Assembly (NCBI RefSeq): GCF_006345805.1
Contig: NW_021832226.1
Coordinates: 124,001 to 188,000 of the forward strand
From: Octopus sinensis
Taxonomy: Eukaryota
DNA: 64,000 nt
Reading direction: 5' to 3'
The position numbers and the translations under genes were made by a program. Positions 11,302-44,485 of the stretch are shown one piece after another; position 1 is the stretch's first letter, and each line of letters begins with the position of its first letter. Below the pieces are notes generated by a model. The model was not told the DNA's origin. It saw nothing but the letters and a program-made list of their open reading frames with translations, and made no database searches.

Positions 11302-12802
11302 ATGGTAGAAAAAAATGACAATGTTGTATCGAGAAAATCTTTTGTGGCTCCATCCCAAAAATTTTTAGGTTTTTCAGCAAATGAATCTCTACAAATCGTG
11401 TCACCAGGCCAAGTATATTCAATCTATTAGGACAGGACGAAAACTGGGTGACAGCAATCAACAACGAAGGGACACGTGGATTAATTCCACTAAGCTATGT
11501 ATGGAAACGAGGCGAAGTAGTCACAAATATGGAATCGTATAAACTAGTTAATATAGCTAGATGTTACCACGGGAAAATAGACAGAATGGAAGCTGAGGAG
11601 ATTTTGAGCTGTGCCTGTGAAGGGAGTTATTTACTGAGAGACTCTTCGTCTCAGTCTGGGACATATGTATTGTCTACGTTTTCTGGAGAGAAAGTAATCC
11701 ACTATTGCATATTCAAACTGGAGACGGGGTATTCAATTGATAAGATATTAATATTTACCAATATTCGAGAACTGTTGCACGTTTGCTTTGAAATAATTTT
11801 CAGTATTATTGTGAAAATGCAACTCTGGGGTATTTTCTTACAAATGGAATCATTCCGGAAAACAGGGAGAGTGTGATTGATAGAGTGGCCTTCCAATCTC
11901 AAGGATGGTTCATCGATCCTGGCAACTTGGTGATTATTAAGAAAATAGGTTCTGGAGAATTTGGAGGTTGATTCCATCTAACTATTATAGACGTATACTA
12001 TGGAAAGTATCAGGAACAAGAAGTAGCACTTAAACAGCTTAAAGACAACCGAGGAATCAACGACTTTCTCAAAGAGGCTTTGATGATGACGTAATATCTT
12101 AATTCATAATTAGGGCGATTTGTGATGTTCATATCGTCCGTTTATTTGGAGTTTCTATCGGCAAAGTAGTCACAATTGTTACTGAATTCCTCGCGAATGG
12201 AAGTCTTTTAAATTACCTTCGATCGCGAGGGAAAACTGAGATTTCTGAAACCGACCAACTTTCATTTTCTTTGTATATTGGTAAAATTATAAATGATAGA
12301 GATATCGCTTCTGGAATGGCTTATTTGGAGAGACATCAAGTTATTCATCGAGACGTTGCTGCCAGAAATATTCTTATTAGCAAAGAAAACTGTGCTAAGG
12401 TTGGTTTAACTAACATAATCATAGGTGGCTGATTTGGGAATGGCAGCTCTCAACACCGATGCTCATAATAAAGTCAAGCTTTCAGTACGTTGGGCAGCCC
12501 CTGAGACCATTAGCAAACGAGTATATCTCGATGTTTATTTATAGATTTATACCACTAAATCAGATGTCTGGAGTTATGGAGTTGTTTTATGGGAAATTTA
12601 CTCTTTCGGATTAACTCCGTATGCCAAATTATCAGTCGATGAAATAATGTCGGCAGTTCAGTCAGGTTATCAACTGGAGATACCATTAAACTGTCCAAAA
12701 GCAATATATTCTCTTATGCATCGTTGTTGGAACATTGACCCTGCATCCCGTCCTTCCTTTGAATCGTTATTTTCACTTATAAAAATATTAAAGACAATTT
12801 AA
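11302..12802 (+). CDS. CSK: C-terminal Src kinase-like tyrosine kinase (SH3-SH2-TyrK)
   Basis: Eight introns of 23-27 nt give an open frame: SH3 (ENWVTA..GLIPLSYV), SH2 (YHGKI..GSYLLRDS), kinase (IGSGEFGDV, VALKQLK, GSLLNYLRSRG, HRDVAARN, RWAAPE, SDVWSYG, WEIYSFG). There is no myristoylation site and no tail Tyr, as expected for Csk. Confidence 0.85.
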
Positions 12803-22449: not shown

Positions 22450-23270
22450 TTAATCAACAAAGTAATTTACAACAAGCAATGGCTCGAAATAATCTCGATA
22501 CTTTTTTAAACGGACAAATTTAATTAGAAGAGGATTGGTAAGCCATATATGATCAGTGTACGGTAAAGGACTCATATAAACGGAATTATTAACAAATCCA
22601 CGCTCAATCGTACTACAATAACTTATACCGTCCCCATCAGCAATACCTAAAAACATAACACATTAATCAGACAACATAAAATAATGCAAAAACTAAAATT
22701 TACTTTGGTTAGATTCCAACTCTGCTTTTTCTACCACAACTTGAACTAAAAATATTAATTATAAATACAAAAACCTGCTTCAAATGAATCATCAAGTATT
22801 TCGTTATTTTGTATGTTAGTTTCATCATTTTGCATTGGACTGGAAATATTAGCATCACCTGAGTCTGAGGGATTTAAACTATCAACAATTCGGTCATCTT
22901 TAACATAATAAAAAGTATACTAACCAGACTGTAATTCCATACTTGAATTCTCATCACTTATATCAGGTGTTTTAATCTCGTCGGTAAGATCCAAAGAATC
23001 AACTATTATCCCATCAATTATAAGATTACCCCTCATCACATTATCCTGTTCCACATTTATCGACATTTCTATTACACAGCTTTCCGAATACGACTCAATT
23101 GGTTCACTTACTGACTGCAAACTGGGATTTGACTTAATAGGCTGCTCGTAGTGCTCTGAATAAGTATCATCCAATATTTGAATTGGTACAGAACAATCTA
23201 AAACTAAGTATTTTGATACTCACCATCCGAATCAGATTTGTTTTTGTACGAATGAGTTGGAGTTGCCTAC
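22450..23270 (-). CDS. Acidic low-complexity exons, probably the C-terminal tail of the ankyrin gene (or a separate gene)
   Basis: Asp/Glu/Ser-rich exons joined by GT-AG micro-introns, ending at TAA 22450. The link to upstream exons was not resolved. Confidence 0.4.
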
Positions 23271-24329
23271 CATTGTGATCAATAAGCATACAAATGTATT
23301 ATTAGGATATATATGTCACAGGCCACAACTGTTACTCCGCCAGATATGTACACTAAAAATCATATAAATAGAAATAAAAACTTTTAAAATTAAAAATTAA
23401 TACAAAGCATAACCTAATTGTTCGCAAAAATATGCTTTTCTGAATAGAAAAAATTTGGACTGAAACATGAATTTTTTCCCAAAAACAACATACCGTGTAA
23501 AATATGAGTTTTAAATTATTTAGCAATCTATTTAATTTTGGCTTATCCATATCTTTTTTTTATTAAATAATTATTCTTTTTTTTTAATAAAAAAAATTTT
23601 AAAAGCCCTCTTATTAGTTTTAAAACGTTTTCTATCAAGGAATCACAAAAAGAAGGATCATTCCCAATTTTAATTAAGCGTGACGTGAACATGTATTTTC
23701 TCATACATGTCACCTGTCTCACTTTGTATTGTTACTACAAAATCGTTTTTGCCACAATTGTGTATTTCACCATCTCTAATCCATCATAAAGTGGATATTG
23801 TCGTTTGTTAGCGTCATTATCTTGCCTAAATTACATGTTTATACATCCCAAATACCTTAAGATTACTATCTCTCCTACACTAAAAGTAGCCTCGTCATAC
23901 TTCCATTTTCTTCTCTGAGCCATTTTATCAGCTGCCAACAGAATATTTACATACGCTTCATCCTTTCCTCTTCCAAATATCTATGTCATCATTTGCATTA
24001 ATAAAAAAAACTAAAACTGGCAAGAATACATCGTTTTATGACACGATTGATCTCTGCAGTGATATTCCGTGGTATAAGCGCGCCAATTTTGAAAAACAAC
24101 CGGTCTCGACCAAAATGATTCAAATTATGTTCAGCCAATTGAAATAAACATTTATTATGCAAACTTCAATATATTTATCTTTAAGTTCAGTCATCGCTGC
24201 AGAAAAATCTAATTTAAGTCCATCTTAGTGATATATGGAGCTCCATCCAAAAAATCAAATTTATTTGCTAATTTCAGTAGTCTTGATCTTTGCATCCGCG
24301 AAAGCGTCCTGCTGACGAATACGAGCTCA

Positions 24330-27300
24330 GGATTGCTCTTAAGTTCCTTAAGTAATTCTAAGTCTTCCTTTGTTACTGCACTAAAGCATTTTTAAAAGTG
24401 TATTTGTAATTTAAAAAAACATCAATATTTTTTAAAAATTTTAAGTTTGTTTTTTTGATTTCAAGAATATACCAAAGGATTCATGTTTTAAGTTTTTTCC
24501 AACTTGACAATTTGATGTTGTGTAACACATGGCGGAGTAACAGTTGTGGCCTGTAGGACATATAATAGTATGTTTTGCGAACGTTCTGGATTTGCTATTG
24601 TTATGAAATGACACCAATGATGTCTGAAATGTTGACTCATCAGACCTGGAAGGAAATTCTATATACATTTTCAGCAAATTGTCGAAAAAAGGGTCGAAAT
24701 AAATAAAGCAAAGATCATCATGTTTAATTGAATAAGACCCCCAACCAGAAACAGAAACGTAAACACACTGATATCCAGGGATCTTTAAATATCATATCAG
24801 TATTTAAATATACTTGAAAATAATTTGAATTCATAACTTTTCGATATCCGGCGTTCTCAAATAAGGAAAATGATTGTTGAACGGCATCAGTAACACAAGC
24901 ACATATGAGATGACATACTGTTGGTGAACATCGAATAGCATAAACGACAAAACGGGCCATGTAATCTAAAGAAATGACCCGCTTATAGAGATTCCCCATA
25001 TTATTATAGTAAATATTTTCATCGGTGTCTATTGCAGCGACAACCCAATATCTATCATCGTTATTTACTGTTTATTACTTTGCAGTTCGAGATGCAGAGA
25101 ACACCACGTTCCCGTCTTCTTGGAGGAGAATGTCTGCAGAATAAGTCACATCTTTCCACAAAGATGACTTGTCTACTGATTAAACATATAAATCTAAACC
25201 GTTTGAGGATGAGAAGATGTAAATGTTGTGTTCATAACCCATCAGAGTGTTATTGAAATCAATTAGAGGCAGTTTACATTTGAAATTTTCACAAAAATCG
25301 AGATTTAATGGTTTTATAACAAAGACAGGACTCACGAATATTTTACTTCCAAGAACATCTTTAATATCGGCATTTTCCACATCAAGAATCTATTCGAATA
25401 ATTAAAGAAATATAAAGCACCTGAATTGCGACATTTGACGAGTCCTTCACAGAATTGGCAGGAAAAGTAAGAGAACAGAGAGAATTAAGATATATAGTCT
25501 GTTCTTTCGAGTCCACTTTGTAAACATCCGTTTTTGGTGCTGAAATGACGGCCAATGTGAGAGGAAATGATTTTATGCATACCCTCACAACATTAGCAGG
25601 GACACTCAATAAATCTACAATTGCTAAATATACAGACCTTGTTGTTTCTCTACGTCAAAAGAGGACGAGATAATCTCATTGAGAATTTCCGTACAATCAT
25701 CTGTAGGATAAGGCACCCATTTCTCAGCATGATTAAAATACAAAATATTAATCGAACGACTAGCCTTATTTACAGAATAATAAGGAATGTCAATCGCCAA
25801 AGGCCTAAAATAGACAATTCAATGATAAACTTCCTGAAATTGGCTTGCTGAGAACTAATTTGAATAATTTTCGTAGCAAAGTATTCCCCATCCGTTAATT
25901 CTGGCCCATGTACAGCTGAAGGATGTGATAAACTAACATTCATTCTCGTTGGACGTACGACAGTGTCAACCCCAACAAAAATATGCATATTTTTGAGCTT
26001 CTTATTCTCAAACACTTTCGGATTTGCGTCGATCATAAAATTGATTCGGAATCTGAAACTGTTTCCTAACACAAACTTTAATGAAGTAACTGATTTAGAA
26101 ATATTTGATTCACAATTATCATCAAATGAACATTCCATCTCGTTTGTAGAATCGCCAAATAGAACGGCTGGGGCATTCAGATCAGTAGCAGCCCAATCAG
26201 TCTCTTCTATTACAGACGAGTCGACCTTGTAAATGACCAAAAACAATAAAACCACTTTGACTTTTTCTTTACATGTTATTGGGTTATGGTTGTCCTCGTA
26301 AACAAGAATAAGAGGATTTCCTCCAATTTGGGACGTGAACAAAAATTTCCCGTCAGACATTGGCCTTAATCTTCCTGGAGAAATATCCAACAAAGGCATT
26401 CCATTTGAGTCAAATAATATGCCTCGCTCTCCTGGTTTGACATATGACTTTGTATCATCGCACATTACGACCGAACTAGAGGGATCAGTAAAGGGAGAAG
26501 TAGAATTTTTATTATAGATTGCAGACGATTTCTTATTAATTGTTGAATAATGGATTAATTCTTTGTTTGAATTATAATAGAGAGCTTCTCCATATCCATT
26601 ATCAACAAAAGCATAAGGGAGCCCACTAGCCATATAAACCGTATTCTCGTCCAAATATAAATTTCCATCAGGTCCAGGAAATATTTTCCTGTATGGAATT
26701 TGGCCATACTCCTGGAAACCAGACGAATTATAAAAGTAATCTTTATTCTCAACCAAAGTAGGTGCTGGAATAGGCACAGAACAGTCGGCATCGAGGTATA
26801 AAGGAATGGAATTGGCTGCTTCGGTAAAACATAGCGTATAATCTTCATTTCTTTGCATTATTGATCCAGTGGTTGTATCGTTAGTAATAGGAATTCCCCT
26901 CCAATTATATAAAAACGAAGAATTGTATTGAGATGACAAATAAGCAAATCCATCTCCTCGTAGCACAAAGGAACCTGGATGTCTCAAGGGGATACCATCT
27001 TGATCACAGACTACCAAATTATTGTACATAAGTTCGCCGGAAGCATCATATCTTAATAAGGACTGATCTAAATTGCAAACTAGAGGACATGCAGAGTCAT
27101 CATATATTAGCCCAGTTTGACTTGAATAGTTCAACCAATAGTTATTATCGACCATCAAAAGATTTGCGTCATATTCATTTGGATTTATCAATTTTCCATG
27201 ATAATTGTAAACAAGTGAACCCAGAGGAGTACGCCGCATCACAAATTTTCCATAAGAATCAATAAGGAAATAATTAGACTTTACGGCATTCCCGTCAACT

Positions 27301-29230
27301 ACACATACTCGTCCATCCTCATTGGCAACCAAAACAAGAGAAGGAGACTCAAAGTTCACCAACGGCATTCCAAAACAGTCGTATGAAATATCATCCACAG
27401 AAGTAACATAAGCATTCTCACGGAAATGAGCGTTAACAGACACCCTGCCGATTTGTTTCATATCACTGTTGAGAACTGGCTTGAGTATTTCCCCACTTTC
27501 ACAATAAAGTAGATTATCATTTCTATACAGCATTGATGAAGAATTATCAGTATTGCAAAGAGGTAATCCATTAGGTAAATATATCACATTTCCAGTATAA
27601 CTGTCACAGTTTATCAGCACACTATCATCTGTTATTTTTAAGGGTCTCATAAACGACGAAAGATCAAAGGAAGGTAGAGAAATACCCTTACAATCAAAAA
27701 TCATATCAGAATAAGCCAACGGCCACACCAAAGGTTTTTTGGTGTTAAAATCACACAAAACTTTTGAGTTTAGTTCCAACAATCCATTTGGTCGAAAATC
27801 TACTGCTTCTTGTCGATAGTCTCCAAAAATGATAGGAAAGCCATAGTAATTATACTGCACAGACTTGTAATTGGAACAACTAATATATATTGCATCATCA
27901 GTTTCGTTTATTATAAGAGACGTTGTGTTTATCGGAGGGGAATCTTTTTTCTCTATTAAAGTCGTCGTAGACTGTTTTGATCCATCCACTGATACCAATT
28001 CGCCGTTTTCGTCAGAATAGAATTGGGGATTAATGTTAATCAGTGGAATTCCATACTTATTCAATATGAAAAAATCTGTACAATTTGAAAACAAAGAATC
28101 TGGTAGTAGACCAATCAGTGGGTTTCCGTTATGGTCAAATGTTGTCAAAATCTCTTTGGGCTCTCTTTTAATTTGATATGTTCCATTGTAGAGAGGTCTC
28201 ACTTTATTCATTTTTTGGTCCATATAGTACAATTTTCTGTGAGAATCGGCGTAAATTGCTCCATTTCCTTCGATAATAGGAAAACCCTGAAAGTCGTAAA
28301 ACATCGTTCCATCGTATTCAATATCATAGCAATCGTCGTTTCGTGATTTAACAGCAAAACTTGGCTTCTCTAACTGCTTCCCATCATCAAACGTTTCATC
28401 TTCATAATGTACTCGATACACCTTGGAATCGCCAGATTTAGCAAAAAGAAATTTAGAAGAGTCGTAGTAGAGCAAATAATTGGTCGAATCCACCAAAGGA
28501 ATCCCTTTAGCGTCATAACAAATGTTGGAATTTGGTGAAACGCACAATCGTAAAACGTCATAATCGATCTTGTCAGCTCTTAATGAAGATAAATAATTTT
28601 TGCAAAAATATGGATTCCCGTGGCTATCAAATGCTAATATTTTAGAATTTCTGTCTTGAGACAGTCCCTGGTTCAAAGTTGTATAAATTTTATTTTCTTT
28701 TTGGTTTGTGTCTTTTCTTTTTACGTTCGATTCAGATATACCACAAGTGGAGAATAAGGAAACGTTAGAATTGACATTGGGTTTGATATCAGTTTCATCT
28801 TTTCTTTTTAACTTTCCTTCCTAAAAAATATTATATCAAAAATGACAATTGTGGCAGATTCTTCATCAAATGACTGACCAATTGGATGAATACTGTTTAG
28901 GACAATAGACGAATTGTCAACATGTTCTAAATTATAATCAGCTTACCAATATTTTTTAAGTAACAAGAAACAAATAAATATTAATAATTAAGGGATTAGT
29001 ATACTGTTTGCTTTTTTGAAGCTAAAAAGCCGTTTGCACCAGTTTTTCTCCTTTGAGCGAAACGGGCAACAGCAATTCATTAATAATTAGAAAATGATGC
29101 AGTAGAATCATTAAATATAAAAGCGATGACAACATATGTCATATACGCGATATCATCATTAGATATAAATATTTATTGACACTTACTTCGGAAGTTTAAA
29201 AATCTTCTTAATCTGTGAGCATCTCCTAAA
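24330..29230 (-). CDS. Ankyrin-like protein, intact part: novel repeat exon + ZU5-ZU5-UPA
   Basis: Open frame through micro-introns: FRINFMIDA..PTRM..GPELTDGEYFATKIIQI..KPLAIDIPYY (ZU5A); FPLTLAVIS..TFPANSV..SPVFVIKP..WKDVT..SRTAKYWVV (ZU5B); LYKRVISLDYMARFVVYA (UPA). Preceded by a 2565-nt exon (26256-28820). Confidence 0.8.
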
Positions 29231-29425
29231 AATGTTATTAAATAAATAAGACAAAACAAATACAATAATAATTGATCGGGGAATGCACAACAGCAACAAA
29301 AATTAAATGATGCTGTCAACTACATAAATTATTTCAAGCTTATATATCAAAATATGCCGATTAACAGCCACAGAAAATTGAATATTTGCCTCTTCTTCAG
29401 ACTCCGTGTGCATGTTTTCATTGAT

Positions 29426-31263
29426 TCATGAAAGAGCTCCAATAATTTTTTTATCCTGAGATATTGCGCCAGATGTTTCAACAGTCTTACAAATTTTAAG
29501 GACATTAGCAATCGCGTGATTATCAAACAATCTGGCAATGTCAAGAGCAGTTTGATTTTCATAGCACAGAAGATTAGGATTAGCTTCAGCCTCCAATAAA
29601 AAATGAAGAAACTCGAAAAATCCCTCCTGGGTTTCCTGGTGAAAAGCAGTATAATCAATCTGTGTCAAAATTACTCAAAATTAAAAGACATTAGTTTGCA
29701 TGTCAAATTACGCCTTATTTTTTAAAAGAAATAAAATCATTTTTACACTTCCGTAGTAACAGGCAATCAGCAGAGAGGTGTATCCGTCCTGTAGATTATC
29801 AAATCATAACTACTTTATTCTGGACGTTGATAGAAGCTCCGTCAGCGTAAAGCAGCTCAGCGCATTCAACACAATCTTCTTTAGCACAGCAATGGATTGG
29901 AGTAATTTCTTTCTGTCAATATTTAAACTAACAACAGACATTCGAGTAAAGAATATTGAGAGCAGAATACTTTAAAAGCAAAGTAACCCCTTCAACTGAA
30001 CATCTGCTAATAACTAAGTGAAGTGTGGCGAATACAACCTATAAGCATAACAAAAATGAATATTCCTTAGAAAGAGTGTCGAAGCAATTCAGCAATGGAA
30101 AAGTTATTATATAAAATTGAAATATGAAATCCCGTGAAATTATTTTCAAACATAAAAAAGCCAGAAATAAACCGAGGCAGCACATGTCATGTTAACACCA
30201 CAATTCACTGATGTTTCTACAACTTTATAATTCCCATAGTGAGTTGCAATCAACAGGGGAGTTAGTTTTCTCTATTTATTAAAGAATATTTTATTACAGC
30301 GGCTAAAGTGTTTACGTCGTCGCCTACACTGAAAAATTATTCGACATTTTTATAGTTTGCGTACTTACAGGCAGTATAAATTGAACAAAATCATTTCTAA
30401 ACTAAGTTCAATGATTGATTACGTAGGTTTTCTTTGTTACGTTAAGATCAAAACCATTTTGTTTTACCACATTTTCGTGGACAATTCTCATCAATTCAAC
30501 TAATCCATGTTTAGCACCCATTGTCAATTAGAATTTTACTGCTAATAGCAAAAGAGCCTCTCCGTTTAATAACTTTAAGAAAAGAATCTGAACCAAACCC
30601 TTGCCGGGAGATTGACATCCAAGCCCAACTGAATGATATATTCAAGAATAGAAAGATTTTTATTGGCAGCTGCAAAGTGCATAGCCTCAAGTCCTTGCTT
30701 ATTTACAATATTTAAATCTGCTCCTCTATTAACCAAATACTTGCCAGTTCAAAATTTCCCATATAAATAACAGTGTGGTGCTGACTCCACCAATCCAAAT
30801 CCTTAAATATTTATAAACAAACCAAATCAGTCACATCTATTATCACTTGGTCAACCGAAAGCAGTGTTTCAACGACTTGAATAACTGGTCATAAACAGGC
30901 GATGTGTAGAAGAGTATAACCATTCTAAAGTATTATTTACGTTATAGTCTGCACCACGAATAATTAATTGGTTAATTATTGCCACATTTCCTTAGTGGAT
31001 TGCCGTGTGGAGAGGAGTCAAGCCGTTTTAGAAAAGTAGTATTTAGGTTAATTAAAACATTTGTTTTGGCTTAAGATTAAATAAAATATCGATAATTAAT
31101 CAAGTAATTAAATTTGTAACAATGAAAACAATCAATTCAGCAGCTGACAAAATCTCAATTAGAAACCGTATTTGTTGAGTTGATACAAATGTCGTATTTT
31201 CAGGCAAAAATTGACCAATTTTAAATCATTTGTGGCGGCTGCCTTTAACAGAAATTCCTCCAT
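29426..31263 (-). pseudogene. Disabled ankyrin-repeat (membrane-binding) exons of the same gene
   Basis: ANK motifs (NGLTPLHTAI, GYTLLHIAC, LTPLLIAT, ITPIHCCA, YTAFHQ..QTALDIA) interrupted by stops at 30992-30994, 30889-30891, 30337-30339, 29708-29710 and 29426-29428. AA replaces AG at acceptors 31028-31029 and 30145-30146, and there are apparent 1-nt indels near 31200 and 30740. Confidence 0.75.
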
Positions 31264-31464: not shown

Positions 31465-32628
31465 TTATCCGCGCCGATATGTATTTCCCGACCCTGTCCT
31501 GTGATCTAACACATAATCCATAATATCAAACAATCCTTATAATCGTCAAATTCTCTCTGCCTCTTCAGTTCCTCCTCCTCTGTTAGCTCACTGGGTTGTG
31601 GCTGGACAGTCATTTTAGACTCATTCTGAGAGCGATTCATTTCAAACCACTGCTCCACTGTGTACACAGGCAAGGACGGATATCCTTGACCAAACACAGC
31701 CTTCTGTGCGTCCTGTCTTGTTAAAATAAAATTCCAAATTATTCAATCCAATAATACTTTTATTCTATTTGATGTGGGCTGAGGTGGAGGAAGGTCTTCT
31801 TTCTTGGTATTCAAAATTTCGATTTCGGCTAAAATTGAAGTTTTTTTAAAAAACTTTGTGCGAATTCTTCTAAATCTAAACATTTTTGTGCAAGATTTTC
31901 TGCATATAAAATCCAAAATTTTCTCTGAATTTACTAATTAAATTGTTGTCTAACTTTAATTTCGTCGTCCGAAGATTCCAGATTATTTCTTAAATTTTCG
32001 ATTTGCTCTTTTCTGGCTTTCATTGCCTTGAAATTTTCAATTTTTGCGGTTCTTTTTGATTCAGGAGTTTGCTTACTATATTAAATAATAATATAAAATT
32101 TAATAAATAATATAAATATAATATATATAAAAGAATTTAAGGTCACATTTGGTTTCTTGTAGTACTCTCAAGTGCTTCAGAGTTACAAATTTCATAAAGT
32201 CGGCAAAGTTTAAGAAAATTATTAGAATATTCCTAATATAGCAATAAAATAAGAATATTATGAACTATGGACTTGTTGATAATGTCTAATCTGCTACTAT
32301 CGGCAGTAGGTTGAACTGCGTTTGAAAAATGTGCAAGAAGTCCAGGTAGTAAGATTAGTCTAAATATTAAAAATAGACAACTTGATATGCTCTGTAGCGA
32401 TTTCATCAATACATTCATTTTTGCTAAATAGTTCTAGTTTGTTGACCATTTCTATCAGCGATGTGCAGTCAGAGGTCGCCTTAGGGAGCAATTTCTGTAT
32501 TTTGGATTATAATAGTACGGATAATTCACTAGATGATGTTGTTTCTATTTTCTCATACACGTCTAATATGTTGAAAAATATGGTGCTGATATTTTCCTTT
32601 GATTTTATGTTAATGTGAACAAAACCAT
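31465..32628 (-). CDS. IGBP1: Immunoglobulin-binding protein 1 / TAP42 (PP2A regulator alpha4)
   Basis: LELFSKNECIDEIATEHIK and FGQGYPSLPVYTVEQWF...REFDDYKD.HRTGSGN match the TAP42 N- and C-terminal motifs. Confidence 0.88.
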
Positions 32629-33344: not shown

Positions 33345-35090
33345 GTTTCGCAGAAATGCCTCTCTGAACTCAATGTATGGTACTTCAACGATGCCACTAT
33401 CGCCAGCCCCGCACAGATAGTTCTTGAGGACATTAATAACATCATTCCTGCGCTTTCCTTTCTCGGTCTATATGTGAATCGGTCTATATGTTGTATTTTA
33501 CCTCCTCAAAAACTTTTTATCGTATCCGCGCCTACAGTACTTCCTTCGTGTTTCCCCTTGTCATGTCTTTCCAAAGAAGCTTGAGCGATTTGACAAAATT
33601 CTAAGAAATTTAATCTTCGAAATCTGTAATCTCTTCTTTGACGACTTCGGATGGTCCCAAGCTATCCTTCCTATTAAACATGGTGGGATTGACCTTCAAA
33701 CACAATCCATCCACTGCTTGCCATCATTTCTGTCATCGAATTCCCACTGAAAACTTCTTTCTCCTTCTTTTGAATCGATCCCAGACGTAGAGTTTTCTAC
33801 TGCAAATTCCATTTGGATCTCCAGGGGCCTCAAGATCCCATCAGATCCCACCCCCCGCTTGTCAAAGAACTGAATGAACATTATTTCCTCGAATTTTTTT
33901 GATTTCCTATTATCACTATTATTATTATTTTAACCCAAGAATCACCAACAGTTAATTAGGGTAATTAATTAGGTGATTCCAACAATCCTCAAAATCTTTC
34001 TCAGCTTTTCCCGATGTTGGACTCTGGACCCAACGCAAGTGCGGGACGGGCGGGGAGCAGTTTTTGTGAGGAATTGGATCGGGGTGATGTGCTTCTGATT
34101 TTTGAATTCTTTTGGCAGGTGGTCTTGTTGGATGGCTAAGAAACCCTTTCCATCTTTCTTAATAAGTTGGTCAAGCGGAGTTGGGGTAATGTTGTTCAGT
34201 TTGGAAATTTTCGTTATGCTAGCCGCGGCTCGGCATAGTGTAGTCTCAATTTTAAGGCGGTTAGACCATGAGAGATTAGAACCCCAAGCGGCGCAGGCAT
34301 AGCCAATTGTTGGTTCGATGAATTGTTTGTAGAGAGTCCCGAGAGCCGGGAACGGTGTCTTTAGTCCACCAAAAATCGATTTGATTAGTCCAATCTTTCT
34401 CTGACTAGATCCGATGGCCTTCTCTAAATGGGCAGTAAAACACATGTGGGTGTCAAAAGTGACCCCCAGAATTTTAGGGTTCTTCGTGAATGGGATCTTT
34501 TCGTTGTCCAGAAAAAGGTCAATAGTAAGGCTTCCAAGTCTTTTGTCCGACGTAAATAGGGTAGTAAACGATTTTTCGGGGGAGATGTTCATCCTGTTTT
34601 GATATAGCCAAGTTCGAATTTGTAATAAGAGACAGACACTCCTCTCTGCTTTCCTCCGCGTCTCAACGAAGCGGTAACTGGCTGAATGCGTTCCGTCATG
34701 CAAAATCGGAAACCTTTTAGACCCCATGTGTTTCAGAATCGGGATCTCTCTGCGTCTCGGTTTGGACATTTGCACCCATCATGAATACCGATGCGGGGAT
34801 ATCGTCGACGTAAAGGGCCTCCACCCTCTTTCTTGCCGAATGTTTGCGAGCCTCCATTTTCTCTCTTCCCGGATGAGTGCAGGCTTTCTCGCAAAAAGAG
34901 CAGAAGATCAAAAGCTCAAAAAGTACTCTTTCCTCGTAGACCGTTTCTCTTTGTGCCGGTGTCGGTATAAACCTCGGGGGTTCTCGGCTTAAGAACCCTT
35001 TGATTATTCCAAAAAATCGGGCTGGAAATCTCCAAACGGAAGCAGGGCCCCCGCGATAAGACTCAATGAGTCTTCCTGATGAATTCAGTT
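33345..35090 (+). mobile_element. CRE-like non-LTR element interrupted by a LINE
   Basis: LNVWYFND (RT), WSQAILPIKHGG, then the LINE insert, then WLNAVPS..CFRIGISLRLG..GLHPLSCR, a deletion, and AEDQKLKKYS..VPVSV.TSGVLG. Confidence 0.8.
33918..34640 (-). mobile_element. 5'-truncated LINE (GIT-stop family, subfamily B)
   Basis: KILGVTFD, LYKQFIEPTIGYACAAWG ... RPSRTCVGSRVQHREKL..VGIT*, with a (TAA)n tail at 33918-33931. Highly similar to 62684-63300. Confidence 0.9.
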
Positions 35091-36757
35091 TTCGGGCATT
35101 TATCTTGTCGACAAAAAACAAAATGACTGGGCGAAGAGTAGATATATCTCACTACAGTGATTATAAACACAATGCTTACGTCGAATACTATTTCTAGCAT
35201 TTAAACATGGTGATAGGGATGTCTATTGGGTTTTTCAAACTCATTCATCTAACTTCATAAGCCATCGCTTCACAAACACCTTTACAAGTAACACTGAATC
35301 CTTGTGATATCAGCGTAATCTTTAAGCAGAAACGACCCCTTTAACAAACTATTTTTGAGGCTAAACATACAGCGATACAAATAAATAACGGAACACTCAT
35401 TTTCTCGATTTTTTTCTATTGAATGATTGATTTATTTTAACAAAAATAGAATTTTTAGAAGACAAACATAACTTTAGCCTTAAAAAAAATAAAAACAACT
35501 TATATTTCGGACTGTAATTAAATCCAGTTTTGTCCAAACAAAATAAAAAAGAGAACAAAACAAAATAAAAAAGAGAACAAAAGAGTTTTTTAAACCATTT
35601 TTTATTTTATTACACGTGTTGATTCTTGTTACATGGTTTTACAACTTACATTACAAGAAAAAGCAGAAATTATTACGTATTATAAAGTCGGAAAGTCATA
35701 TCGGGAAATAAGAAATTTGACCGGAAGATCTTTGAGTGCCATCTCGAGAGTCATTCGAAACTTCACCATGAATGATTCCTTTCAGAGAAAAAAAGGCTCA
35801 GGACGAAGATTTAAACTTAACTCTGATGATCTCGGAATAATTCAACGTGAACAAAAAACTGACGTATTTCAATTCCGTAAAATGTTCAAAAATTTTACGT
35901 TCTGAAACGGGAACTGCTGTCACATCACAGACAGTGAGGAACTATTTGAAAAGACTGAACATATCGACGTTTCAGCCTACGAAAAGGCTATATCTGTCGA
36001 AAGAACACAAAAAGACTTGACTTTCTCAGTGCATTAAGTGGAACATGTTGCCGAATGTGTTCTGGAATCGAGTTATTTTTAATGATGAATCGAAATTCAA
36101 TCTATTTAATCCCGATGGAAGAAAATTTGTCTGGAAAAAAAGGGGACAAAGGCTTTTAAGCGAAAATGTTACTACAACAGTCAAGTTTGGAAAAGGGAAC
36201 GTAGTGGTTTGGGGCGCATTTACATCGGAATGTTTTTCGGAACTTGTTTGGATAAAGGGAATTATGAATGGGAACTTATATGTAAGTATCTTGGCGGACT
36301 ATTTGTTGCCTTTTTTGGAGAAAACCGGAATCCGGTCTCCAATTTATCAGCAAAATAATGATCCAAAGCACACATGCAAGGTGGCTAAAGATTTTTTTAA
36401 TGAACACCGAATTGAGTTATTAAAATGGCCTCCTCAAAGTCCCGATTTGAATCCAATCGAGCACGTGTGGGCCTTCATGAAACATAAAATAAAAGGGACT
36501 GAATTAAAAAAAAGAGTGACCTATTTGAGGAATTAAAAAATATTTGGAATGATTTTTCAATAGAATGCGACATCCCTTGTTGGAACAATGCGGAACAGAA
36601 TTTTAAACGCAATTAATGCTCAGGGTGGTCATACTAAATTTTGAACTACCATTGTTCTCTTTTTATTTTGTTTGAAAAAAAATTTGGTTTAAATCTTAAT
36701 AATAAAATGGTATGGTGTGTGTCTGTCTGTGTGTGCACACCAACTTCAAATTGGCAA

Positions 36758-42910: not shown

Positions 42911-43579
42911 ACTATCTTAAATTAGTTTTGAAATCATTAATCCCTTTGAACATGCTCAAGTTTTTATTTTACTATTAACCAGACAAATAATCTTTTTGTC
43001 AGCTCCTACTGAATTATTCCACTACGTTATGTTTTAATATTCAATGATAATGTGAAGAAAATCGTAAAATTTTAAATCCATGACACCGATTTGAATAATT
43101 CTTCCAAATTTAGCACAATTTTTATAAAATTGTGCTAATTATTCAGAAACCAACATTATTCAAAAACGACGAAAATATTAGTTTTCTATTATAAATCATA
43201 CAACTTCAAAAAACATTTGAGAATTCAAGACATATAAGTTTAAAATAAAAATTTTTTAAAATTCAATTCAAAAATTACTCTAAGTAGAGTCAAAATTTCT
43301 TTTTTATATAAACTATATGCGAATTATCATGTTTATTTAGTTTTAAATAAAAAAATTTGTGTGAACTGTCTGTATAAGTAAATTTTTATTCAAGCTCGAT
43401 TTGAAATTTAAAAAATTGAATGTTAAATTCTTCATAAAAATGATTTCAAAGCATGTTTCAATTCAACAGCCTTATTTCATGATTAATTAAGAAAATTTAA
43501 GCTTTAAAACCAAAGGATTCGTTTCAAGGAAAATACTCACACAAAAGATCTATTCCTCAAATATTGATACGAATCTAAA

Positions 43580-44485
43580 ACTATGGCTTGGGAATTTCCT
43601 GAGCGGCCGTCGGGGAAGGGCTTGCTGTGGAAACAGATCTTCCATATCGAGACTATTACCAAATGGGGTCCCTCAGGGTTCTCCACTATCTCCACTTTTA
43701 TTCAATCTCATGATGAACGACATACCACAGCCAGAAGGGGACAACGATCTGTTATTACTATATGCAGACGATATTATCGTCGCATCAAGGGATGTGAGCA
43801 TAATAAAAGCAACGAATAGAATACAGGATAACCTCAACAATCTGATTTCATGGCTATATAAAAACGAACTGGAGGCAAGTCCGGAAAAATCTATTTTGAC
43901 TCTGTTTACGAAAAACAGAAGGCTTGGGAAAGTCTCAATTGAAGCGAAGCTAGACGGGGAAATTATACCGCAGAGCAAAACCCAGAAGATTCTTGGAGTT
44001 ACATTCGACACCTTTCTAACCTTTTCAACCCACGTCGAAAATGTAGTTATGGCGGGTGCAAGAAAGGTTAACTTCCTGAATGCCTTCCTGAAGAACGCAG
44101 GAGAATGCAAAGGCCTATATGGCCTAAACAACATATATAATCAATACTTGGAACCTACGATCGGCTATGCGTGCGGAATCTGGGGAACAAACTTAAGTGC
44201 AAACAATCAATCAAAAATCGACAAAATTCGGTTGAAAGCGACAAACCTGCTAAATACTTTTTCCGATAAAGAGATTATCCCAAAAGCCTGGAACAGCATC
44301 ATAAAGTCATCTGCAATCCATCTACGAGATGTTCGTCCTGTAAATCCACGTCCGTACCGAAAATGCGTCGGGACAACGGCGGAACATGGGAGAGGCTGCG
44401 CGAACTGCTGAGGGAGGCTGGGATCACCTGAATTCTTCTTTCTTTTGGCTATGACGGTGGTTTTCTGGTTCAAATAAATAAATAA
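43580..44485 (+). mobile_element. 5'-truncated LINE (GIT-stop family, subfamily C)
   Basis: GVPQGSPLSPLLFN, YADD, KILGVTFD, YLEPTIGYACGIWG ... RPYRKCVG..H..LLREAGIT* (one frameshift), and a (TAAA)n tail at 44472-44485. Confidence 0.9.

Follow-up and report, generated by a model that had tools for sequence, protein, structure and literature searches.

Ankyrins are the standard, conserved adaptors in which 24 ANK repeats bind membrane proteins and the ZU5-UPA part binds spectrin. The known innovations of the family are giant, disordered exons placed after UPA, which encode extended and largely unstructured polypeptide. Such exons follow UPA and come before the death domain (PMC12798937; PMC12681835). 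In vertebrate ankyrins, the ANK repeats and ZU5 are joined by a linker of ~113 unstructured residues, the active part of which comes from a single exon; small and highly divergent, this exon regulates the ANK groove (PMC3663501). Here we describe an ankyrin-family gene on the minus strand of a 64,000-nucleotide (nt) stretch of DNA from the Octopus sinensis assembly GCF_006345805.1 (contig NW_021832226.1, positions 124,001 to 188,000). In this gene, a single exon of 855 codons, which carries a recurrent motif and matches no known domain, precedes the ZU5-ZU5-UPA module. The whole stretch is called the window, and all positions are given in its numbering.

The gene shares its downstream part with the canonical ankyrins (ANK1/2/3, Drosophila Ank and Ank2, Caenorhabditis elegans UNC-44). 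In a phmmer comparison, 445 residues matched the ankyrin-2/3 structures of ZU5N-ZU5C-UPA from one end to the other (6m3q, 6m3p and 4d8o; 3e-29), and thus have the domain tandem that marks the ankyrin family. ANK repeats likewise lie upstream, one repeat per 99-nt exon; translated conceptually, they match the structures of ankyrin-1/2 at 1e-80, with the best stretches in R18-R24. However, canonical ankyrins have 24 ANK repeats and the locus at most ~11, interrupted by eight stop codons. Where they have the linker of ~113 residues, the locus has 855 unrelated residues, and where they have a death domain with a regulatory tail and an arginine in the DAR motif of ZU5N, nothing was found after UPA and the arginine is replaced by Asn. 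The giant ankyrin exons (the 7.8-kilobase exon of 480-kDa ankyrin-G and exon 37 of 440-kDa ankyrin-B) are, like the exon described here, single, very large, intron-free and lineage-specific. They are nevertheless placed after UPA, whereas our 2565-nt exon is upstream of ZU5N and has an order-promoting, aromatic-rich composition with a recurring, hairpin-like motif. No sequence similarity between the two was found in a word-index search or in a scan of 1.84 billion proteins. The ankyrin-B linker exon occupies the same position in the gene as the large exon; it is, however, small, unstructured and bound back into the ANK groove, whereas the large exon has 855 codons and stands next to an ANK domain that looks defective. 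An earlier note, made on this DNA from its letters alone, had called the position of the exon unusual, and the literature agrees (PMC12798937; PMC3663501).

The large exon is part of a minus-strand frame of 1016 codons without a stop (28820..25773), directly preceded by the acceptor ttttttag/GAAGGA at 28822-28821. Stop codons occur at a frequency of 0.063 per codon over the six frames of the window, and the second-longest open segment, which belongs to a reverse transcriptase, reaches only 306 codons; the frame is therefore not open by chance. The other exons modelled in the window measure 97-342 nt and the introns 23-31 nt, making the large exon an outlier. Both the uninterrupted length of 2565 nt and the exceptional size had been correctly recognised in the earlier note. 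The GC fractions at the three codon positions (GC1/GC2/GC3) are 0.41/0.35/0.31 in the large exon and 0.41/0.34/0.31 in the adjoining ZU5 coding sequence, and no non-coding RNA turned up when the window was scanned for Rfam families and tRNAs. The stretch 28820-26256 genuinely codes for protein, as one exon of a gene of the ankyrin family, and the animal genome that contains it has ultra-short introns. Introns of 23-31 nt have been reported from just two animal lineages, the myxobolid myxozoans and Dicyema japonicum (PMC13644364). The D. japonicum genome has a GC content of 36.7%, 49% repeats and a mean exon length of 198 bp (PMC6736024); with ~33% GC, debris of long interspersed nuclear elements (LINEs) and Tc1-type transposons, and exons of ~200 nt, the window comes closer to these figures, a likeness that is suggestive only.

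The exon is in phase 0 at both ends and has a length divisible by three, a configuration that would permit its skipping as a cassette. Its first ~57 codons are Lys/Asn/Ser-rich and linker-like, while codons 58-855 carry the motif array, and the first ATG comes no earlier than codon 173. Two basic clusters, KLKRKD and KRKD, are found ~25 residues apart in the polar, disorder-like sequence of the first ~57 codons (28650-28820, minus strand) and could be an element resembling a bipartite nuclear localization signal, or part of a linker. At the other end of the exon, the 30-nt element 26255-26226 preserves the frame whether it is spliced or retained; its length and T-richness resemble those of the other 23-31-nt introns of the locus, and we treat it as a putative intron.

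Beyond this element, the frame continues without a stop into ZU5N-ZU5C-UPA, so the new region and a module of the spectrin-binding type form one polypeptide. The join to ZU5, a central claim of the earlier note, is thus upheld, as the frame runs into ZU5N at 26051. From the large exon onward the introns measure 26, 23, 31, 24, 27 and 31 nt, and the joined downstream product matches Pfam ZU5 (1.1e-8) and UPA_2 (1.1e-7). No death domain or C-terminal regulatory region was detected after UPA, where the frame ends with the TAA at 24441, by Pfam on the downstream open segments; exons outside the model are possible. Further open segments lie past the UPA stop (22450-24391, minus strand), among them an acidic, Ser/Asp/Glu-rich piece of 99 codons at 23219-22923. 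Three of them (24391-24212, 23980-23834 and 23219-22923) gave no significant Pfam match, and the segments could belong either to another gene or to a C-terminal part of the ankyrin-family gene that escaped recognition. The Asn in ZU5N (FMIDANPK, aligned with FMVDARGG) replaces the DAR arginine, which contacts β-spectrin and would correspond to R977 of AnkB; if this assignment is right, the spectrin tether may have changed its partner or its affinity. The R977Q substitution in ZU5A of AnkB weakens β2-spectrin binding (PMC12681835).

The array in the large exon is built on a core of 11 residues, h-h-[YF]-D-x-x-G-h-P-L-h, where h is a hydrophobic residue. The strict pattern [YF][DN]xxGxP[LI] occurs seven times, as compared to 0.01 expected from 2000 shuffles, and a relaxed pattern 13 times, as compared to 0.2 in the shuffles. 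An iterated hidden Markov model (HMM), with the threshold set to allow 0.1 false hits per shuffled sequence, identified 13 robust copies across exon residues 58-813. Together with about four weaker copies (FLIDSYGKFV, LVYNYHGKLI, YFYNSSGFQE and TVYMASGLPY), the total is ~17, within the 15-20 degenerate copies counted in the earlier note, all 11 of whose quoted peptides are present. In a column-by-column view, the Gly and the Pro of the core are kept in 12 of the 13 copies and the core is limited to positions -2 to +8, while weaker hydrophobic positions recur after the motif at +15/+16 and +23 to +25. The copies are irregularly spaced, at 24-165 residues, and the tightest units, of 32-33 residues, are found at exon residues 567-664. 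At the DNA level, neither tandem nor direct repeats were found in the exon. The conserved Gly (ggg/ggt/gga/ggc), Pro (cca/cct/ccg/ccc) and Leu are encoded by different synonymous codons among the copies, indicating that the motif is held by selection on the protein. The motif reads as a strand, a D-x-x-G turn and a second strand. It is a candidate for a new repeat motif, with this single sequence as its only example.

The composition of the exon (9.6% Ser, 9.5% Leu, 8.7% Asn, 8.4% Asp, 7.3% Tyr and 6.2% Gly) looks foldable and β-rich. In a charge-hydropathy plot, all but the first 95 residues of the exon lie on the side of folded proteins. A Kyte-Doolittle analysis revealed no transmembrane segment (maximum 19-residue mean, 1.27), in agreement with the earlier reading.

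Searches for relatives of the exon were negative. Pfam and NCBIfam scans gave no match, phmmer against the PDB sequences gave chance hits only, and tblastn found no paralogue in the window. Nothing related was found among 32 million prokaryotic contigs and 241 million metagenome records. Three word-index protein searches, with the exon, the ZU5-UPA part and the unit profile, also returned nothing; these negatives are weak for divergent sequences, because the search with ZU5-UPA failed to recover ankyrins that are easily found by phmmer. The HMMER (phmmer) scan of 1.84 billion proteins produced a single borderline hit (P0001, E = 2e-4), which was rejected as a relative because it is a perfect tandem-repeat protein with only 'YDADGTPW' in common. 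When the unit profile was compared with the PDB, the best match was a hairpin of PBP2x, RGTIYDRNGVPIAED, which is not significant (E = 0.63). This match suggests that the motif core is a common strand-turn-strand solution; such 'h-Y-D-x-N-G-x-P-h' hairpins of unrelated proteins occur singly, form no array and have no homology to the exon. The undescribed nature of the domain, as the earlier note put it, is therefore supported by Pfam, NCBIfam, the PDB and the 1.84 billion proteins.

The resemblance to YD/RHS repeats (teneurins, bacterial Rhs and Tc-type shells) that the same note had seen did not withstand these searches. Those repeats have in common with the exon the Tyr-Asp-x-x-Gly β-turn, a length of ~800 residues and a Tyr/Asp/Asn/Gly-rich composition. 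Yet they have Arg-Leu after Gly-x and a spacing of ~20, whereas the exon has Pro-Leu and a spacing of 24-165 residues, and the exon is joined to a ZU5-UPA of the cytoskeletal ankyrin type, with no signal peptide or transmembrane segment seen. Neither RHS_repeat (Pfam) nor a YD-repeat family (NCBIfam) was matched to E = 10, a limit at which the filters drop most matches above ~0.1 and may conceal very weak ones. No credible relative appeared among the 1.84 billion proteins, a nameless library whose coverage of YD/RHS proteins is presumed from its breadth.

The ANK region upstream presents a different picture. At most ~10-11 repeats fit, because a TAP42-like gene lies directly upstream, ~200 nt from the ATG at 31263; the 24 intact repeats of the family are thus absent, and those that fit contain stops and a frameshift. 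The eight in-frame stops (five TAA, two TGA and one TAG) occur at positions where ankyrin-1/2 have a residue, a 1-nt frameshift is located at 30742 and a second one is probable, and the TGA at 29428-26 closes the ANK frame 16 codons past the last repeat. All eight stops fall within ~450 ANK codons and none within the ~1,400 codons downstream (probability ~1e-5 if spread evenly). Reassignment of stop codons was rejected as an explanation, since a CSK-like gene in the window (our control for the standard genetic code), the ZU5-UPA exons and the 1016-codon frame are all read without internal stops. Removal of the stops by splicing was likewise rejected, as the stop-free GT-AG paths lose halves of repeats, pass through a 2-nt exon and depend on introns of 52-299 nt. 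The distribution of the stops, the clean reading under the standard code and the implausible splice paths together indicate relaxed constraint on the ANK part and maintained constraint on the gene from the large exon onward. Throughout 29426-31263 (minus strand) stops far exceed insertions and deletions, a pattern that would be odd if this were the ordinary decay of a pseudogene. Between the last ANK repeat and the large exon, one stop-free route uses an open piece of 32 codons (28941-28847) and a 26-nt intron to reach 28820; in a second, a possible start ATG at 28866 is joined to 28803 through a 43-nt intron. The earlier note had described an insertion between the ANK repeats and ZU5 of an ankyrin. 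The position is right, but a single protein that includes the ANK repeats is not demonstrable across eight stops and one or two frameshifts. The host does belong to the ZU5-ZU5-UPA family; with ~10-11 broken repeats, it is not a canonical ankyrin.

We propose, with about even confidence in the proposal as a whole, that a constrained orphan motif exon of in-situ origin has been fused to ZU5-ZU5-UPA as a foldable β-hairpin scaffold while the ANK repeats decay. The ANK solenoid of this paralogue appears to be decaying or to have been cut already to a few repeats. The product under selection would be a new β-rich repeat region followed by ZU5-ZU5-UPA, starting either from a 5' end near 28.9 kilobases or from the few surviving ANK exons. 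The new region would fold into a scaffold rich in β-hairpins and supply a repeated binding surface in place of the ANK solenoid of ordinary ankyrins, and the ZU5-UPA part would tether this scaffold to the spectrin skeleton, perhaps with altered affinity. Its origin would most likely be an ancient internal duplication, followed by divergence of the intron-free coding stretch. A bolder version, in which a parasite with a reduced genome replaced its decaying ANK solenoid by a de novo β-hairpin array as the cargo or membrane platform on ZU5-ZU5-UPA, is conceivable, but we rate it as rather unlikely.

Several observations weigh against this proposal. In the sequence flanking the core, similarity between copies does not exceed that between random exon pieces, and blastp detects no internal repeat; because there is no measurable similarity outside the 11 residues, a structural repeat array is not proven. 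AlphaFold2 models of the whole exon (predicted local distance difference test, pLDDT, 31.5) and of a 200-residue piece given a pseudo-alignment from other parts of the array (pLDDT 36.3) consist almost entirely of short strands and hairpins, but their confidence is too low to be usable. Thus, of the β-hairpin repeat domain envisaged in the earlier note, the recurrent motif stands, while the fold is a conjecture. The large exon is one sequence only, with no orthologue by which selection could be measured through comparison. By dynamic programming, ~72% of the ANK-like codons can be threaded on a GT-AG path free of stops, so the large exon could still be attached to a shortened ANK domain. The ANK stops could also be artefacts of the assembly or of haplotypes. 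Finally, the 5' end, the start codon and all of the splice junctions are predictions from DNA.

A rival is the model of the earlier note, in which ANK repeats, the 855-residue insert and ZU5-ZU5-UPA make up one full-length protein; the stops would then be spliced out or be assembly errors. We consider this model possible, but on balance unlikely. It draws on the ANK coding sequence directly upstream on the same strand, whose last repeat matches R24 of ankyrin and is followed by linker-like acidic sequence, and on the three intact 99-nt ANK exons with introns of 134, 27 and 25 nt. It also draws on the stop-free path through most of the ANK-like codons, on the need for upstream coding exons that follows from the lack of an early ATG, and on the cassette-like, phase 0-0 exon divisible by three. 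However, the eight stops stand where the consensus and the alignment expect a residue (for example KNKA-TAA-FDMQTN as compared to QHQA-D-VNAKTK), and the stop-free paths, with their skipped repeat halves, 2-nt exon and 52-299-nt introns, contrast with the 23-31-nt introns modelled in the gene. Moreover, the last ANK repeat is followed after 16 codons by the TGA (29428-26) that terminates the ANK frame, and the available space holds no more than ~11 repeats, not 24. The exon might instead encode a multivalent array of linear motifs rather than a folded domain, with 13-17 peptides of 11 residues binding one partner domain, like DPF/NPF/FG arrays. This is improbable in our judgement, although it would fit the conservation confined to 11 residues, the spacing of 24-165 residues with inter-motif sequence like random exon segments, the lack of an internal repeat by BLAST and the very low AlphaFold2 confidence. 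A low pLDDT is expected of any orphan without an alignment, and between the motifs the sequence has abundant Tyr, Leu, Ile, Phe, Cys and Asn and plots with folded proteins in charge and hydropathy. With its hydrophobic residues (h-h-Y...h-P-L-h), the motif looks like a β-hairpin that is buried rather than a peptide that is exposed, and the hydrophobic positions at +15/+16 and +23 to +25 recur beyond it.

Evidence stands against each of the last three explanations. That the whole locus is a dying ankyrin pseudogene with a long open frame devoid of function seems very improbable: a 1016-codon open run has a chance of ~e^-66 at 0.063 stops per codon, the confinement of eight stops to ~450 ANK codons, with none in ~1,400 downstream, has a probability of ~1e-5 under even spread, all six tiny downstream introns preserve the frame, and the motif is conserved with synonymous variation. 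The stops and frameshifts of the ANK part, the failure to find a death domain or C-terminal region after UPA and the loss of the DAR arginine are what such an explanation can offer. Capture of the exon from an intronless foreign or retro-copied donor, for example a bacterial YD/RHS-like β-hairpin protein, would account for the lack of introns in an otherwise intron-dense genome and for the likeness of the YDxxG turn to the YD-repeat consensus, YDxxGR[LIV]. We nonetheless hold this origin, which the earlier note had entertained, to be highly doubtful. There is no RHS_repeat or YD-repeat match to E = 10 in Pfam or NCBIfam, the 1.84 billion proteins yielded one borderline hit (E = 2e-4) sharing 'YDADGTPW' only, the 32 million prokaryotic contigs and 241 million metagenome records yielded no related sequence, the codon-position GC is the same as that of the host gene, and the frame is continuous with ZU5. 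The units could also be thought of as hyper-diverged ANK repeats, given the 32-33-residue units at codons 567-664, the resemblance by eye of D-x-x-G-h-P-L to the D-x-x-G-x-T-P-L-H of ANK, and their location in an ankyrin gene with 99-nt ANK exons. This origin was rejected and retains hardly any credence: hhalign of the unit profile with the ANK units of the same gene gave a probability of 0.06%, none of the six frames of the exon was hit by the ANK HMM, which scores 1e-17 to 1e-49 on the ANK region, and there is no Pfam ANK match. In addition, the sequence after the motif is Asn/Asp/Ser/Gly/Tyr-rich, and the low-confidence models contain strands, not the two helices of an ANK repeat.

Table 1. 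Parts of the ankyrin-family gene, listed by window position
Feature	Position	Strand	Remarks
ANK-repeat region	29429..31263	-	from ATG 31263; N-terminal cap and ~10 repeats (Pfam Ank on pieces, three-frame reading)
In-frame stops in ANK region	31030-28, 30994-92, 30927-25, 30891-89	-	verified
In-frame stops in ANK region	30530-28, 30339-37, 29710-08, 29428-26	-	verified
Three intact one-repeat ANK exons	30271-30173, 30038-29940, 29912-29814	-	99 nt each; introns of 134 and 27 nt between, 25 nt after
Stretch between last ANK repeat and large exon	28821..29428	-	several stop-free GT-AG routes
Large exon	26256..28820	-	2565 nt = 855 codons; acceptor at 28822-28821, GT at 26255
Motif copy 1, LAFDSHGNPYF	28605..28637	-	HMM
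Motif copy 2, ICYDAKGIPLV	28491..28523	-	HMM
Motif copy 3, MFYDFQGFPII	28272..28304	-	HMM
Motif copy 4, TTFDHNGNPLI	28113..28145	-	HMM
Motif copy 5, FILNKYGIPLI	28038..28070	-	HMM
Motif copy 6, VQYNYYGFPII	27828..27860	-	HMM
Motif copy 7, MIFDCKGISLP	27672..27704	-	HMM
Motif copy 8, VIYLPNGLPLC	27555..27587	-	HMM
Motif copy 9, ISYDCFGMPLV	27357..27389	-	HMM
Motif copies 10-12, LIYDDSACPLV / VVCDQDGIPLR / FLYNWRGIPIT	26883..27110	-	tightest part, 32 and 33 residues apart
Motif copy 13, ILFDSNGMPLL	26388..26420	-	HMM
Putative intron, GTGGTTTTATTGTTTTTGGTCATTTACAAG	26226..26255	-	30 nt, T-rich, GT..AG; retained form would encode VVLLFLVIYK
Continuation of open frame	25831..26225	-	~58-residue linker, then start of ZU5N; FRINFMIDA begins at 26051
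Six further exons	24441..25804	-	rest of ZU5N, ZU5C and UPA; all splice joins in frame
Exons of ZU5/UPA part	25804-25638, 25614-25421, 25389-25200	-
Exons of ZU5/UPA part	25175-25079, 25051-24814, 24782-24441	-	stop TAA

The TAP42/alpha4-like gene directly upstream (31470-32510) is on the same strand as the ankyrin-family gene. Its last long exon matches Pfam TAP42 at 2e-11, and its conserved C-terminal end, ...DDYKDYHRTGSGNTYRRG, is recovered across a 26-nt intron. The CSK-like gene (11385-12799, plus strand) encodes an SH3-SH2 tyrosine kinase (Pfam SH2, 2.9e-15) and is cleanly spliced, with GT-AG introns of 23-27 nt. Also on the plus strand, an open segment of 200 codons at 13955-14554 matches the CD20/MS4A-like family of four-transmembrane proteins (Pfam CD20, 1.8e-8), and two open segments at 853-1596 give weak Gelsolin-repeat matches (E = 0.007 and 0.003, below the Pfam cut-off), possibly marking a gelsolin/villin-family gene at the window edge. 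Mobile-element remains include a fragment of a non-long-terminal-repeat reverse transcriptase (43491-44408, plus strand; Pfam RVT_1, 3e-17) and a Tc1/mariner-type DDE transposase (36021-36533, plus strand; DDE_3, 2.3e-18). A 269-codon open segment at 33972-34778 (minus strand) has no match and looks reverse-transcriptase-like by eye. Similar short peptide blocks recur at ~10.4-11.1, 16.0-16.4 and 50.0-50.4 kilobases.

The locus thus represents a route of ankyrin innovation different from the known one, since a large exon of foldable composition and without relatives stands before the spectrin-binding module, next to ANK repeats that are apparently dying. Orphan sequence is common in highly derived parasites, and if the exon were a fast-evolving orphan without a partner, it would be one more lineage-specific sequence in such an organism. 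If the scaffold-swap reading is true, an unrelated repeat scaffold would have been exchanged on a conserved cytoskeletal adaptor. Should transcripts confirm the gene, it would provide a natural experiment in swapping one repeat scaffold for another, a candidate new protein repeat fold, and a case for how long intron-free coding sequence arises where exons are ~200 nt and introns ~26 nt. An ankyrin gene in which a constrained new repeat exon adjoins a decaying ANK domain is out of the ordinary, and the case lends itself to direct tests.

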